Assembly: GCF_006345805.1 (NCBI RefSeq)
Contig: NC_043003.1
Span: 109,678,001 to 109,742,000, forward strand
DNA: 64,000 nt
Origin: Octopus sinensis
Taxonomy: Eukaryota
Direction of reading: 5' to 3'
The translations under genes were made by a program, and so were the position numbers. Below are positions 26,301 through 35,300 of the stretch, piece after piece. The notes under the pieces are model-generated. The model searched no databases and was not told where the DNA came from. It saw only the letters and a program-made list of their open reading frames with translations. The first letter of the stretch is position 1, and every line of letters starts with the position of its first letter.

Positions 26301-29300
26301 TACAAGAATTCTTTTATCGTAAAGTATTTACAAAATACGTTTGACAAAATGGAGATATTTTTATTTAAACTTTAAAACATTAAACAACCAAACATTTGTT
26401 TACGCCAAAGAAAACAGAAATGAGTATCCGGAATTTTGATTACACACTAAAGTGAAAAAACTCAAAGCATCAATTTCCATGATAGATGTATCCTATATCT
26501 TAATTTGTTTTGCTTTTGCAATCCTAGAACATATTTAGTTTTCATCGTAAATAAGAGGTTAAAACAAATCTTACTCAGATTAAGACGACGGTCGAATGTC
26601 TGATAAGATTCTGGGAAGATTCCAGATCAATGCTTGTTCTATTTTATAAAAATTTAATCAAGAATTTTTTGGACAGTAGAGATATTAGTTGTAAGTTTTT
26701 CAGAAAGCCGAAACTATATGTTCATTCAATTTTAAACGGCAGTAGTGACAAAGCATTGTCTGTACATCTTAGGCAAAACAAATATCACAAATAATTTCCT
26801 TCTGATGGACTAAAGTATTGATATTGTCAATGATGTGAATACGTACAAATTCTACTGTCTCAAAAACCTAAATCCGTACTGCTTTTCTCATCGGATAACG
26901 ATGTTTCATGAAAGTGAATTTTATAAGTTAAACACGATTGTTTCAAATCTAATAAGTTTGAATCAAGCAAGTTTGAAACTAGTGTTCCCGTCTGCTGTAT
27001 TACTCCCCTCTTTTGGTGTCATTAAATGTTTTTTTATTTTAGATTTCGCAAATATAACAAAATTGTGTGAAATTTTTAAGTGTTCCTAGATCTTAACTGC
27101 TTTTGCGCATGACCGAAAGAAATTATTTTCTTTTCTTTATCATAAAAAAAACAAGACCAGACGAGAAATAAAATTTTATGTTTATAATTTTGTTCTTTTT
27201 GCTTTTGATATATGGAAGTAATATCATTAACCATATAGTGTTGAGCAATTTGGATTATTACTAAGAATATTTTGTTTTTGCTATTCAGGCAATCAACCGA
27301 AGAGACTAGCCAGATGTAAGTTTACAGCATCAACATTTTCTTTTGAACATTCGTTTTGTTTTTGTTTATTTGAAAGATAGTGAGTCTGTTAGTCGAAGGA
27401 AACTAGTTTCACCTTTTTCAGATCAAATATATCTCTTTCAGTAACATCTACTTTCTTAATCTTTCTCCTTTTTAACTTATTAAGGAAACCTAACATTTTC
27501 CAAGAAATTAACTACTATTCACTCTGTTATTTATTTTGTTTTATTTTTGTTTACATTTGTGTGACTCTTTTCTAAGATTATATAAAACCAGAAACCCTAA
27601 CAAACAGATAAGAAAATGTTTGCTTTTATACTTCAGTTGTTATTGAATTCATGTACATTTTTGTTTGAGATTGTTAGACTAAGTTTACTTGCAGTTCGTT
27701 TCATTCGAAGTGTGTTTCTCTTTTCAAAGAAATAATTTCCAGTACCAGTAATATACCGTTTTAAGTTATTAAGTTTATGGAGAATATTAATAACGTTAAG
27801 CAATATTTCAGAGTAGATGTGAAATGATTAATATTAATATTTTAGAGAAAAAGTTTTTAGTTATTACAGAGTATCAATATTTTCCATACTTTCTGGAACA
27901 AGCATTTTAAGTTTCTGCAAAATCTTTGTATATACGTATATTTATGTTTAAATATATACGTGTGTGTGTGTGTGTTTAGGTATATATATAGTGAATGCAC
28001 TGAACGTCTGTGTGCATAAATTTATGCATTGGCGTAAAATTTTAAATATTTGTTTTAATTTCAACACAGAGAAACTGTGGAGGAACCTGCTGCTCCGATG
28101 TAAGATTTTTCGAAAATTCATTTATTTGAGTCTATCAGTTTTTTCCTGAAACGCTTTGTACCATCCTGCTTTTCACTATTTTTGTTTTACATTCCCCTCC
28201 CACCATCACACCAGACCACTCTTTCCGATTCTACCACCACTTTCCCATTTGGTGATCCTCGATTTACTCTCATCACGTATTTGGCCTCAGTAGGAATAAC
28301 TTCAAGACAACTGTGGCCAGTTTTTGTACGCACAAACATTAACCAACTAGTATTCGCCTACTTGGTCACTCGATGTATTAGAAATAATAAACTAATATTC
28401 TTCAAATTACATTCTAATTTGTTTCATAAAGGATATATATTGGACAACACAGTATCTGATAAAGACGAGATGGTTACATTTAGAAAATCGTTTCAGCGGA
28501 GACTCTTTTGAGGCTCCGTAACAACATCTTAGTCTAGAATACTGTAGCAGTTTTGTAAATGTACTGAAATACCATTGTTAGTTGAGGCATCTACACTCAG
28601 CTAATGTACTCATGCTCCAGCCGGGTGGTGGAGTGTGAAAGCACACATTCTGTTGTTGCTGGAACAAATGTTATTGCATTTGCATTTAGATGAAGGATAT
28701 CAGAATACAGAACCAATAATTTATTTCAAGGACCACAATGACGAGTAATAAGTTGTCCAGCTGGAAATATGGGGTTGTCGTGTTATGATAGATGTGAATG
28801 TGTTTTTCCAAACTTTTCTTGGATTGAGTGGTAGTTATCTTGTCAAATAGACAATTACGTTATAACCAAGAATACGAAATGCCATCTGCGACTGAAATTT
28901 GCAATGCAAAACTTTCGTGACGACAGGAAGTCTAGATATAGATTTGATGATTGCACATATTTGAAGATTTTGAGTAACATTCTGTAAAACACTTCACTAA
29001 CAACTTTGATCCAAAGCTTTAGAAATCCAATACAGCCAACAAAGCAATAGAGTCAGTAATTATAATGAAAAAAATAAATATAATTAATAGAAATATGTAA
29101 ACTTGTTACCTTATATAAATGCGAGGTACATAAAACGAGTGTGAAGTTTCGTTTCTTAGTTGAAGTTTTTTACAGCTTCACTGCAAAAGTAGTCGCAAAT
29201 TCTTAGACATATATGGAGCGCAGTTATTAGTTTCTCTTAAAGTGGTGTATGTTGCTAATCTACTTTTCCTTTCGTCTTATTTTATATCTATCTTTTCCTT

Positions 29301-32300: not shown

Positions 32301-35300
32301 ATTTTTATTTTATATTCACCCACCATCACACCAAACCATTCTTTTTAAGTCCCTTTCCAATTCTACAACCATTTTCCTATTTAGTCATCCCCGATTCACT
32401 CTCCTCACGTATTTGTCCGCAGTTGCACAAACATTAACCGTCTAGTAAACTTCTACTTGGCCGCTCAACTTATTAGAAATAATAACCTAATATTCTTCAA
32501 ATTACATTCTCATTTGTTTAATACCGGATATATATTGGATAACGTAGTCTCTTATAAAGAAAATCGACGGGATGGTTACGTTGGGAACTTCAGTTTTCAG
32601 CCAAGTTTATTGTAGCAGTTTCTCAATGTACTGAAACCTTATGTTAGCCTGAAACAGCACTCGGCTTTCTGATAGTTTTATATCAGGGAATGTGATGAAA
32701 AACAAATTTAATTAAGAGAAATACTGAAGAATATCATTTAATATAAATTCTAAGAACATAAAATGTGTGCGTGGTTTCATTTCTCAGTTGAATTCTTTAC
32801 AATTTTATTGACTGCAATGGCGATGGGATGGTACTCGCCATTGACAAGACCCCAAGAAGGGCGTAAAACGTCTGGCGTTCCCGTGAGTTGCTGAAAATGT
32901 TCGATTCACCCCAATATTTATCTGTGAAGTGATTTTCTACCAGACAAAACCACAGCCTGATGCTTGTTAATGATGTACATGCATTAAGTATGATACATAA
33001 ACAGCTTTTGCAATATTTCCCTTTAAGATATTCTCCTTACCTTTGTAACATCAACTCATTAAATAGGATTAATTATTTTTGTGATTCCTATTTTCCTTTC
33101 GTCTCAATTTATCTTTCTCCTCTATTTCATTGAAAAATCTTTTTCTTTTTAACTTTCATTTGTAATTATCTCTTTGACCTGATTATCTTTTCCACATCTA
33201 GGAATGCTTTTCCCGAAACTTTCAGCACTGAAACGTCTTTTCTTTGAAAATTGCTTTGATATTTGCTTGCTCAATGCGTGTTATATAAACGGTGATCCTG
33301 ACGATTTACTTGCAAATGATATTTTTTTTTTATCATTTATGTTGACCTCACATTTCCTATCTCTATCGAATATCCCCGCAGTCTTTAGCATAAAAAAGAC
33401 CTCATTGAATATCAAAATAGTCTCCTGGAATGCATTGTTACACACACACACACACACACACACACACACGCACTTCGGCACAGTCTTCGTCTAATATATT
33501 ACGTAGACGTAGGATTTCATAACTTAGAAATAAAGATTCTTGATCTTAGTAGGATACAATATATTGCCGGTGGCAAGATCCGAACTCATGGTCGGTACTA
33601 TTACTGTCATTCTAGCTGTGTAGCTGTGGGCAGTTTGTAAAATATTTAAATTCTAGTAGAAAATAATGTTAGACAAATTATGAATGTGAAAAGCAAAAAT
33701 TAAAGTAAAAAAAAAAGAAGCAAAAACCCTAGAAAAAACACAGAAGGAAATTGATCAGTGGATGGTCCAAAATGGAAGAATTTAATACGGAGTGCGTGCA
33801 ATTTCATGCTAGTTGCATCCTTTGCGCTATGAGTTAAAGTTCAGATCACACAGAGGTTGCTACTATTGTTTTTCTCTTGAATCGATAAATATCAAGTCAA
33901 ATCAGGGTGAGATTTGCTCGTATGTACTTTTCTCTAACAAACATGAGGCCTTGTGCCTATATTAGAAATCAATAATTTAGTTTCCATGCATTGAAAGAAA
34001 ATGGTTGTTTTTCTGTTTTTTTTATTATTATTGTAGACTTAGGGTGTGGTTGAATAATACACAAAAATAACAAAAACAAACACAAAAGCAACAAATAAAG
34101 GAACTAGAATCTCGGTCATTTATATGGAATTTCAACAATTTCTTTCTTTTGTAAATGTTCTTTAAATTGCCTCTTTCTCAAGCTTTTACGAATTTCAGAC
34201 TGAAATGCCAAAAATGTTATGATTTCAACGCACTTGTTGCTAGCAGCTCTGTCAATTCCAATAAAAAGCATGATAATAATTCATCTTTTACCTTTCAGTT
34301 TTTAATGTTTATTGTTCTACACTTTTCAACTGTTTTTAAAATGTTTGTTTAGTAGTTGTAAGATATTTCAGTTAGATATAAGATTATTACTAATACAAAT
34401 AAAAATATTACCTTTTTAAAATTAAAATAATCTAATAAATATTGTAATTCTGTAATTTTTTTCATGTTTAATTTTGAATATTGTGTAATTTCTAAACCAT
34501 ATTGTTTTGGTGTTTTCCTTTGTGTAATGTGTAATTTAATGGCGTCCTCTATGTCACAGTTATACGATGTAGTATTTGTAATTTTTGTAAGAGTATGAAT
34601 TGTTTATAGTTTGTTTTGAAACTTCATCCATTTTATTGTGTTGATATTTTGGTGTTGACAAAATTGTTCATCAGTCTTAGGTAAATTCAGAAAGTGAGGT
34701 GGTTGATGGCTAAGATTTTGATCTATTTGCTCTAGATTTATGAGCTCAAAACCATGTTAACTTTAATTATGAGGCCAAAACTTTTTAAAATGTATTGCTT
34801 TAGCGTAGTACATATAACTACTCCAGAGTACGTACCAGATCCATTAGCAATAAGGATCAAAATCAGTAGTGGATTGTTGTTTACCTTTAATACACACACA
34901 GACATACATAATTACAACCGGCTTCCTCTTGTGATTAAAAACTAGAGCCAACAATGGTTTTCGGCCACGTTGCTATCAGTTGTGTATTGCAGACGAACGT
35001 GATTCTGTTATCTACAACAACCCATATCACATTTAAACTACAAAGAATAAAATTGTCACCACAAGTTAGACATACTTGGGAAGCGAAGTTTCCTTCATAG
35101 GCGAACCGGTTTATTGGTAGTCAGTTTAAACAGAAGATTATAGATTATATGCGATTGGCAATGTTTTTAGTCATTCATTTGCAAATCTATTTGAAGTGAA
35201 TTGAGAAAGACTACAGAATTTAAGGAATATAAGCATATTTTCATACTGTGAAGTGTGATATAAAAAAAACTCAGTGTTTTGATGCGCTGGGGCATAATTG

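Follow-up and report, generated by a model that had tools for sequence, protein, structure and literature searches.

Three homologous microexons in a troponin T gene

The stretch of Octopus sinensis DNA analysed here, referred to throughout as the window, comprises 64,000 nucleotides (nt) of contig NC_043003.1 (NCBI RefSeq assembly GCF_006345805.1, positions 109,678,001–109,742,000; 66% A+T) and carries on its + strand a gene for troponin T (TnT), in which three microexons, designated m4, m5, and m6, are homologous to one another along with their flanking introns. Membership in TnT was evident from a match to the Pfam domain Troponin (PF00992, E = 1.2e-10) at exon 51793–52002 and from a spliced model identical to O. 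sinensis ‘troponin T, skeletal muscle’ across the shared exons, and the exons of the gene exactly match the O. sinensis RefSeq isoforms. The exon model was assembled from splice consensus alone and agreed residue for residue with XP_029638600.1 (troponin T, skeletal muscle isoform X10), except for m6, which is skipped in X10. The gene's variable N-terminal segment is made up of the start-codon exon, nine small alternative exons (15–30 nt), and exon 44005–44041. Every one of the nine alternative exons is in phase 1-1 with a length that is a multiple of 3 nt, such that the reading frame is kept by any subset. Positions are counted from the first letter of the window and features lie on the + strand unless another locus or strand is named.

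Microexons m4 (28070–28099, 30 nt, ETVEEPAAP), m5 (31279–31305, 27 nt, ETVEEHTP), and m6 (32191–32220, 30 nt, ETVEEPPAP), all phase 1-1, were recovered in a splice-consensus scan. Their peptides occur in RefSeq isoforms, that of m4 in both O. sinensis and O. bimaculoides and that of m6 in O. sinensis X1, X15, X16, X32, and X34. A preliminary description of this DNA had presented the three exons as local duplicates copied along with their introns, and the exon letters it quoted are present in the window exactly as written. Exon identity is 85–90% over 27–30 nt with a common phase and lengths of 27, 30, and 30 nt, as expected of a tandem exon duplication. The valine codon is distinct in each copy (GTG in m4, GTC in m5, GTT in m6), the sole exonic length difference is 3 nt, the splice sites are intact in all three (ACAG before the exon, GTAAGA after it), and the introns contain many insertions and deletions (44–70 gap columns per pair in ~420 aligned columns), all in keeping with that description.

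Homology outside the exons was recovered by BLAST between 27471–28436 and 30695–31658 (68% identity, 1017 columns, E = 2e-76), between 28020–28480 and 32141–32582 (E = 4e-98), and, as patchy further blocks with 72–85% identity, between 29070–30469 and 32698–34282, such that the repeated region spans ~27471–34282. A profile of the repeat unit returned exactly three matches in the window (E from 4e-49 to 3e-56). As the homology reaches into the flanking introns over 0.5–1 kilobases (kb), the copies are of genomic and not retroposed origin, and scans of the window for Rfam families and tRNAs were empty, with no sign of a short interspersed nuclear element or an RNA-derived unit. The repeat is a local segmental repeat and not a dispersed element.

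The three units differ in extent. Unit 1 (27471–30694) is the full-length copy of ~3.2 kb, with ~0.6 kb of upstream intron, m4, and ~2.6 kb of downstream intron. Unit 2 (30695–31658, 68% identity to unit 1) is truncated to ~0.58 kb of upstream intron, m5, and ~0.35 kb of downstream intron, and is followed by a spacer (31659–31989) that has no homology to the other units detectable by BLAST and is orthologous in O. bimaculoides. A (GA)n microsatellite and a short TG run (31990–32130; only (GA)7 in O. bimaculoides) form the 5′ edge of unit 3 (32137–34282), a 5′-truncated copy with ~54 nt of upstream intron, m6, and ~2.1 kb of downstream intron. The preliminary description had given every copy ~0.4 kb of upstream and ~0.6–2 kb of downstream intron. 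Upstream homology of ~0.6 kb was found for copies 1 and 2 only, with the TG/GA microsatellite reached ~54 nt before the exon in copy 3; downstream, ~0.38 kb is common to all three, and a further ~2 kb, patchy and reaching 30469 and 34282, is found in copies 1 and 3 only.

Two further properties of the repeated introns were observed. The (GA)~70 tract directly upstream of m6 (31990–32130) and a (TC)14 tract at 36860–36886, 465 nt upstream of the exon encoding DTTEVSNT, are perfectly complementary over 27–28 nt and would bracket m6 and the exon encoding VTTEVPSN in the pre-mRNA; this complementarity may be due to chance, since GA repeats are common in the window. In addition, in the same reading frame no stop codon interrupts the pyrimidine-rich intron 3′ of each copy (28104–28508, 31327–31629, and 32385–32612) over 135, 101, and 76 codons. 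A 1166-residue pseudo-protein composed of translations of the intron open reading frames (ORFs) had no match in the protein database at E ≤ 10, and base composition, not a gene, is the likeliest source of these stretches.

Conservation among cephalopods and possible constraint on the copies

The window was compared with the corresponding loci of O. bimaculoides (L009), Argonauta hians (L010), and the cuttlefish Acanthosepion pharaonis (L011). In O. bimaculoides the whole region is colinear with the window and, as in O. sinensis, there are three copies in the same order (exactly three profile matches), each of which pairs with its orthologue in 200/200 bootstraps. The introns of Argonauta do not align with those of Octopus. 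The unit profile nevertheless matches 13435–13577 (E = 1e-6), a region that holds a 27-nt exon encoding ATEEDSSE (13473–13499), included in isoform X24 and located 470 nt 3′ of the orthologue of m3 (QSTEETSQ; 27289–27315 in the window, from splice consensus and RefSeq), the microexon directly upstream of the repeat array. Argonauta and Octopus have the same m3 peptide, encoded with four synonymous differences, while the peptide of the m4 family differs at most positions; the m4/m5/m6 family sits in the fast-evolving part of the TnT tail. The cuttlefish locus has the EEQT exon, with no member of the m4 family detectable (best profile match, E = 2.1).

A weak second match was observed in Argonauta, ~0.9 kb downstream of the functional exon (L010 14382–14505, nhmmer E = 0.002). 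Its 3′ half resembles m5 (GAACGTACCTCGAT/GTAAAA donor) and the acceptor AG is missing at the homologous position, so that it looks like a decayed copy. If this second copy is real, the first duplication would predate the Argonauta–Octopus split and one copy would have died in Argonauta.

Each Octopus copy has the same weak 5′ splice site (GAU/GUAAGA, with U at −1) and the same 3′ splice region, and each is followed by a related intronic motif: TCCTGCTTTTCACT at 28164–28177, 65 nt after m4; TCCTGCTTATCACT at 31375–31388, 70 nt after m5; and TCCTGCTTTTCACT again at 32287–32300, 67 nt after m6. The pattern TCCTGCT(T/C)(T/A)T(C/A)ACT is found 53–70 nt downstream of the copies and nowhere else in the window or in the O. 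bimaculoides and Argonauta loci, with three occurrences in the window (once per copy), likewise in O. bimaculoides, and one in Argonauta; as the pattern was built from these very sequences, what counts is solely where it lies and that it is unique. No match in Argonauta was obtained at ≤3 mismatches with an 18-mer consensus of the Octopus motif, and a downstream-only profile matched the correct place in Argonauta with E = 0.6, such that conservation of the motif across genera rests on its position and on the whole-unit match (E = 1e-6). The downstream element would then be recognisable in both genera within introns that are otherwise unalignable.

All tests of selection were based on exons of 27–30 nt. 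Substitution divergence of the introns between O. sinensis and O. bimaculoides was 7.5% (810/10,846). Relative to this rate, m4 (0/30) and m5 (0/27) were conserved (joint 0/57, P = 0.012), whereas m6 had two changes in 30 nt, both protein-altering (E to V and one in the junction codon; P = 0.61). The six microexons compared between the species had 8/168 changes in total (P = 0.11), and the intron flanks, 30 nt on each side of the three exons, had 7/180 (P = 0.037). Among the paralogues, the exon was more conserved than distal intron in the m4–m5 pair (24/27 identical vs 68%, P = 0.015) and the m5–m6 pair (23/27 vs 66%, P = 0.03), but not in the m4–m6 pair (27/30 vs 83%, P = 0.24), so that the slower exon divergence anticipated for all copies was found in the pairs with m5 only. 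Conservation was highest in a stretch that starts at about −35 to −25 and ends at +20, covering the exon with its splice signals (for the m5 pairs, P = 4e-4 and 5e-5), and the short intronic motif ~65 nt downstream of each copy likewise ranks among the most conserved parts. Counts of synonymous and non-synonymous changes were 0–2 events per comparison, in agreement with constraint and far too few to test. Purifying selection on all three copies, as first proposed, goes beyond these counts, m6 changing at the intron rate; the histidine proposed as a gain in copy 2 is encoded in m5 and its codon is conserved in O. bimaculoides. Overall, the comparisons weakly suggest that the splicing signals and m4/m5 are constrained and that m6 is indistinguishable from neutral.

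It is possible, if rather unlikely, that m6, and perhaps m5, is a neutral passenger that was copied with working splice signals, is spliced at some level, and will eventually decay. The 2/30 changes in m6, both non-synonymous and equal to the intron rate, are what such a passenger would accumulate, m6 is confined to the longest isoforms in the O. bimaculoides models listed, and the weak second Argonauta match without an acceptor AG (E = 0.002) may have decayed in this way. Further, with ~0.08 substitutions per site since duplication, the seven splice-site bases have a chance of ~0.57 of surviving without selection, so that their survival alone proves nothing. This account is at odds with the absence of changes in the 60 nt of intron flanking m6 (0/60), the intact motif downstream of m6, the presence of m6 in five of the 14 O. 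sinensis models listed, and the complete identity of m5 between the species (27/27).

Order of duplication

Sites were counted in a three-way alignment of positions −65 to +390 around each exon. Sites unique to one copy numbered 82 for m5, 27 for m4, and 28 for m6. Jukes–Cantor distances were 0.055–0.075 between orthologues, 0.144–0.164 between m4 and m6, and 0.31–0.35 between m5 and either of the others, with m4–m6 the closest paralogue pair in 200/200 bootstraps. Since one intron rate is expected across 6 kb, the excess of sites unique to m5 indicates that m5 split first and that m4 and m6 separated later, at about half that age. The three orthologue pairs and the larger distances between paralogues place both duplications before the split of O. 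sinensis and O. bimaculoides, and the neutral distances correspond to ages of ~2.4x and ~5.2x that of the species split. The copies thus arose in two or more events that differ in age, or m4 and m6 were homogenised later. The 3-nt length difference between the copies is real, but it may be an insertion in the ancestor of m4 and m6 and not a deletion in m5, as the Argonauta homologue has 27 nt.

Gene conversion between the copies, as opposed to selection, might keep the exons similar. In its favour, the block that is conserved covers just ~85 nt with the exon at its centre, and over the 25 nt directly preceding the exon three states are common to m5 and m6 but not to m4, contrary to the downstream signal. 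Such conversion is improbable, however, as every copy groups with its own orthologue (200/200 bootstraps), paralogue distances are equal within and between species, so that none has occurred since the species split, no pair has a long identical tract in common, and the valine codon is different in all three copies.

The single tandem triplication of the preliminary description, with all copies made together and since held by purifying selection on the peptide, is very unlikely. While AG/GTAAG and a length divisible by three were retained in all copies and the proportion of synonymous changes exceeds that of non-synonymous changes (pS > pN) in each paralogue pair, the m5 branch is three times the length of the m4 and m6 branches in neutral intron (82 vs 27/28; 200/200 bootstraps), between species m6 diverges as fast as intron, with both of its changes protein-altering, exon and intron identity are no different for m4–m6 (P = 0.24), and the synonymous and non-synonymous counts that could speak for selection comprise just 1–2 events each.

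Exon use and the troponin T N-terminus

Isoform combinations were read from 30 RefSeq models (14 from O. sinensis, 16 from O. bimaculoides), all of which are computational. The combinations encountered were none of the three, m4 only, m4+m5, m4+m6 (O. sinensis only), and m4+m5+m6; neither m5 nor m6 occurred without m4, which was the most often included of the three copies. The peptides of all three are found in XP_ models of the two species, and isoform X1 has them in series (...IETVEEPAAPIETVEEHTPIETVEEPPAPM...), such that, as far as predicted transcripts go, every copy is used. On these models, m4, m5, and m6 are cassette exons and would not be mutually exclusive. A mutually exclusive cluster, in which one of the three is chosen per transcript, would suit exons duplicated in tandem with one phase and similar lengths but is extremely improbable, given RefSeq isoforms with 0, 1, 2, or 3 members (two or three of them in series), lengths in multiples of 3 nt that let the frame survive joint inclusion, introns of 3.2 kb and 0.9 kb that hence impose no steric block, and a docking/selector scan that gave only loose duplexes at non-homologous positions; no docking site complementary to a common selector was found, and the long inverted repeats in the window were GA/TC microsatellites.

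A possible RNA structure was observed around the copies. RNAalifold, applied to seven copies, predicted an A–U-rich stem pairing positions −35 to −24 with +1 to +12 of the 5′ splice site (e.g., 28035–28046 with 28100–28111), which would place the whole microexon in a loop and mask its 5′ splice site; the predicted stem is weak (−7 kcal/mol), has almost no covariation, and is partly broken in Argonauta.

Within the conserved downstream block there are two YGCY motifs 13–16 nt apart, in Argonauta as well as in Octopus, and 2–3 YGCY motifs fall within +20 to +120 of each copy compared to a background mean of 0.74, with 15% of intron windows reaching at least two. MBNL proteins bind YGCY motifs (PMC2853123), and Muscleblind affects TnT splicing in Drosophila, according to the citation of Vicente-Crespo 2008 in PMC3315501. 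The likeness to MBNL-regulated TnT exons is one of YGCY motif resemblance alone, and the link of m4/m5/m6 to Muscleblind is only a lead suggested by the sequence. Enrichment of TCACTATT was not significant once paralogy was allowed for. Tentatively, each duplication may have copied a complete splicing module, in which the weak 5′ splice site and the 3′ splice region are joined by a downstream element (core TCCTGCT plus two YGCY motifs) predating the Argonauta–Octopus split. The copies would then have been born wired to the same muscle splicing regulator, possibly Muscleblind, with a graded control in octopus muscles of the length and charge of the TnT N-terminus in zero to three steps that is independent of the vertebrate and avian systems, a scenario regarded as conceivable and not as probable.

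The best overall explanation, held with good confidence, is that an array of cassette microexons in the TnT N-terminus arose by at least two local duplications, with m4 and m5 constrained and m6 near neutral, and would act as a stepwise adjuster of length and charge. The three exons would descend from one ancestral 27-nt exon, also present in Argonauta, through two or more local duplications, each of which took along splice signals and flanking intron with the exon. An older split would have set apart the m5 lineage, and a younger event, at about half that age, would have given m4 and m6, with the younger copy starting at the TG/GA microsatellite ~54 nt upstream of m6. With the same splice sites and the intronic motif ~65 nt downstream retained, each copy would behave as an independently included cassette, and a working splicing module copied each time would make a new exon usable immediately. 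With each exon included, the acidic N-terminal extension would grow by 9–10 residues and gain about three negative charges, so that the array may adjust TnT in steps of length and charge like the alternative N-terminal exons of vertebrates, in which the acidic extension tunes troponin conformation (PMC7581897). Microexon m6 would be spliced in but evolve at about the neutral rate, with m4 and m5 under constraint.

Several points weigh against this explanation. All of the selection tests, on exons of 27–30 nt, were just marginally significant, including that on exonic substitutions over the whole six-sequence tree (8 observed vs 14.3 expected, P = 0.05). The sister copies m4 and m6 flank the older m5, an order that one simple tandem duplication cannot give and that needs either the duplication of two units with subsequent loss of a copy or a copy of unit 1 having been inserted at the microsatellite, downstream of m5; no degenerate fourth copy was detectable by the unit profile. 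As just three sequences are compared, ancient gene conversion between m4 and m6 could also account for the long m5 branch. The use of the exons is known from RefSeq Gnomon models, in which exon combinations can be computational, and the function of the array as a charge adjuster is proposed by analogy to the biology of vertebrate TnT.

The remainder of the variable region is as follows. The coding part of the start-codon exon (MDEEDH, 20337–20356) agrees with the RefSeq N-terminus, and upstream of m3 it is followed by the microexons EEQT (21837–21851, splice model and RefSeq) and ESPASGF (24227–24250, RefSeq isoforms). The first exon 3′ of the array is VTTEVPSN (36489–36515), followed by DTTEVSNT (37352–37378) and STGGDEGAG (41325–41354), all three from RefSeq, and exon SFEGDEAKVKME (44005–44041, splice model and RefSeq), which closes the variable region and is in all of the models listed. 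In O. sinensis the isoform numbers go up to X49 or higher, in O. bimaculoides to X34 or higher, and in the shortest model, X49, the start exon is joined straight to SFEGDE…, with the whole variable region gone. A protein search with one C-terminal exon returned short exon-ORF fragments only, the nearest of which (P0001) has 75% nucleotide identity and aligned across the exon alone. Neither the exon ORF at 51811–52029 nor the intron ORF at 28182–28511 was found in an index of contigs. Among the TnT homologues, a 301-residue protein with 62% identity to the octopus protein (P0039) carries the record name ‘hypothetical protein V6M80_12265 [Enterococcus faecium]’ and lies on a contig of 1.4 kb; it almost certainly stems from animal DNA contaminating a bacterial assembly.

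A possible second microexon family was noted in VTTEVPSN and DTTEVSNT, which are identical at 19/27 nt and lie 863 nt apart, and perhaps also m3; the three have in common ACCGAAG and a GTAAGTT donor. Comparison of the flanks of m3, VTTEVPSN, and DTTEVSNT with one another and with those of m4–m6 gave no convincing alignment, so that any duplication there would be older. Both VTTEVPSN and DTTEVSNT have 3/27 nt changed between O. sinensis and O. bimaculoides, and the O. bimaculoides orthologue of DTTEVSNT (L009 20051–20077) does not appear in any of the 16 models read from that species. Elsewhere in the window, ORF-like repeats (…RNWYLIYR.RKDERQSRP..NLNSER.D.RNTAKHFARRA…) occur on both strands (18474–18707 on the − strand, 62156–62641 on the + strand, and 35696–35758) and look like fragments of an interspersed repeat or transposon, and the final 1 kb has longer minus-strand ORFs.

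A literature search returned nothing on cephalopod TnT exon structure or on the origin of these exons. The fast TnT of vertebrates (exons 4–8 and the fetal exon) and Drosophila TnT (upheld) also have tiny 5′ exons in multiples of 3 nt that generate many acidic N-terminal isoforms. Octopus m4–m6 are akin to vertebrate exons 4–8 and to the fly microexons as functional analogues, but we know of no report of recent duplicates with alignable introns among the small TnT exons of vertebrates or flies, whereas in octopus the homology of both exon and intron is still visible. The octopus copies resemble tandem exon duplications in general in being adjacent, homologous exons of the same phase with copied splice signals and, in the predicted transcripts, alternative use. 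Many textbook tandem exon duplications are mutually exclusive pairs within structured domains, unlike the octopus copies, which would be additive cassette microexons in an acidic tail expected to be disordered. A Drosophila TnT microexon is the subject of Benoist et al. 1998, going by its title in the reference list of PMC3315501. The parallel to avian fast skeletal TnT (TNNT3) drawn in the preliminary description extends to mechanism, in that the P exons/Tx are duplicated N-terminal exons, alternatively spliced, that add length and negative charge, but not to the histidine-rich metal-binding motif: the avian Tx repeats are His-Glu rich and form a metal-binding cluster (PMC7581897), whereas the octopus repeats are rich in E, P, A, T, and V, with one histidine in total (m5). 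The P exons are spliced in after hatching in pectoral muscle (PMC7581897), compared to the piecemeal use of the copies in the octopus models, and the avian and octopus arrays are of independent origin.

RefSeq already annotates the exons described here, and birds offer a known case of tandem exon duplication in TnT; no concept is changed. The locus does provide a clean, datable case in which the TnT N-terminus grows as a microexon and its splice signals are duplicated repeatedly, with stages distributed across lineages: none in the cuttlefish, one functional copy and one degenerate candidate in Argonauta, and three copies in two species of Octopus. It suggests for muscle physiology a testable series of isoforms distinguished solely by how many acidic repeats they have, and cephalopods would have come independently to the same solution as vertebrates, with many small alternative exons that leave the frame intact.

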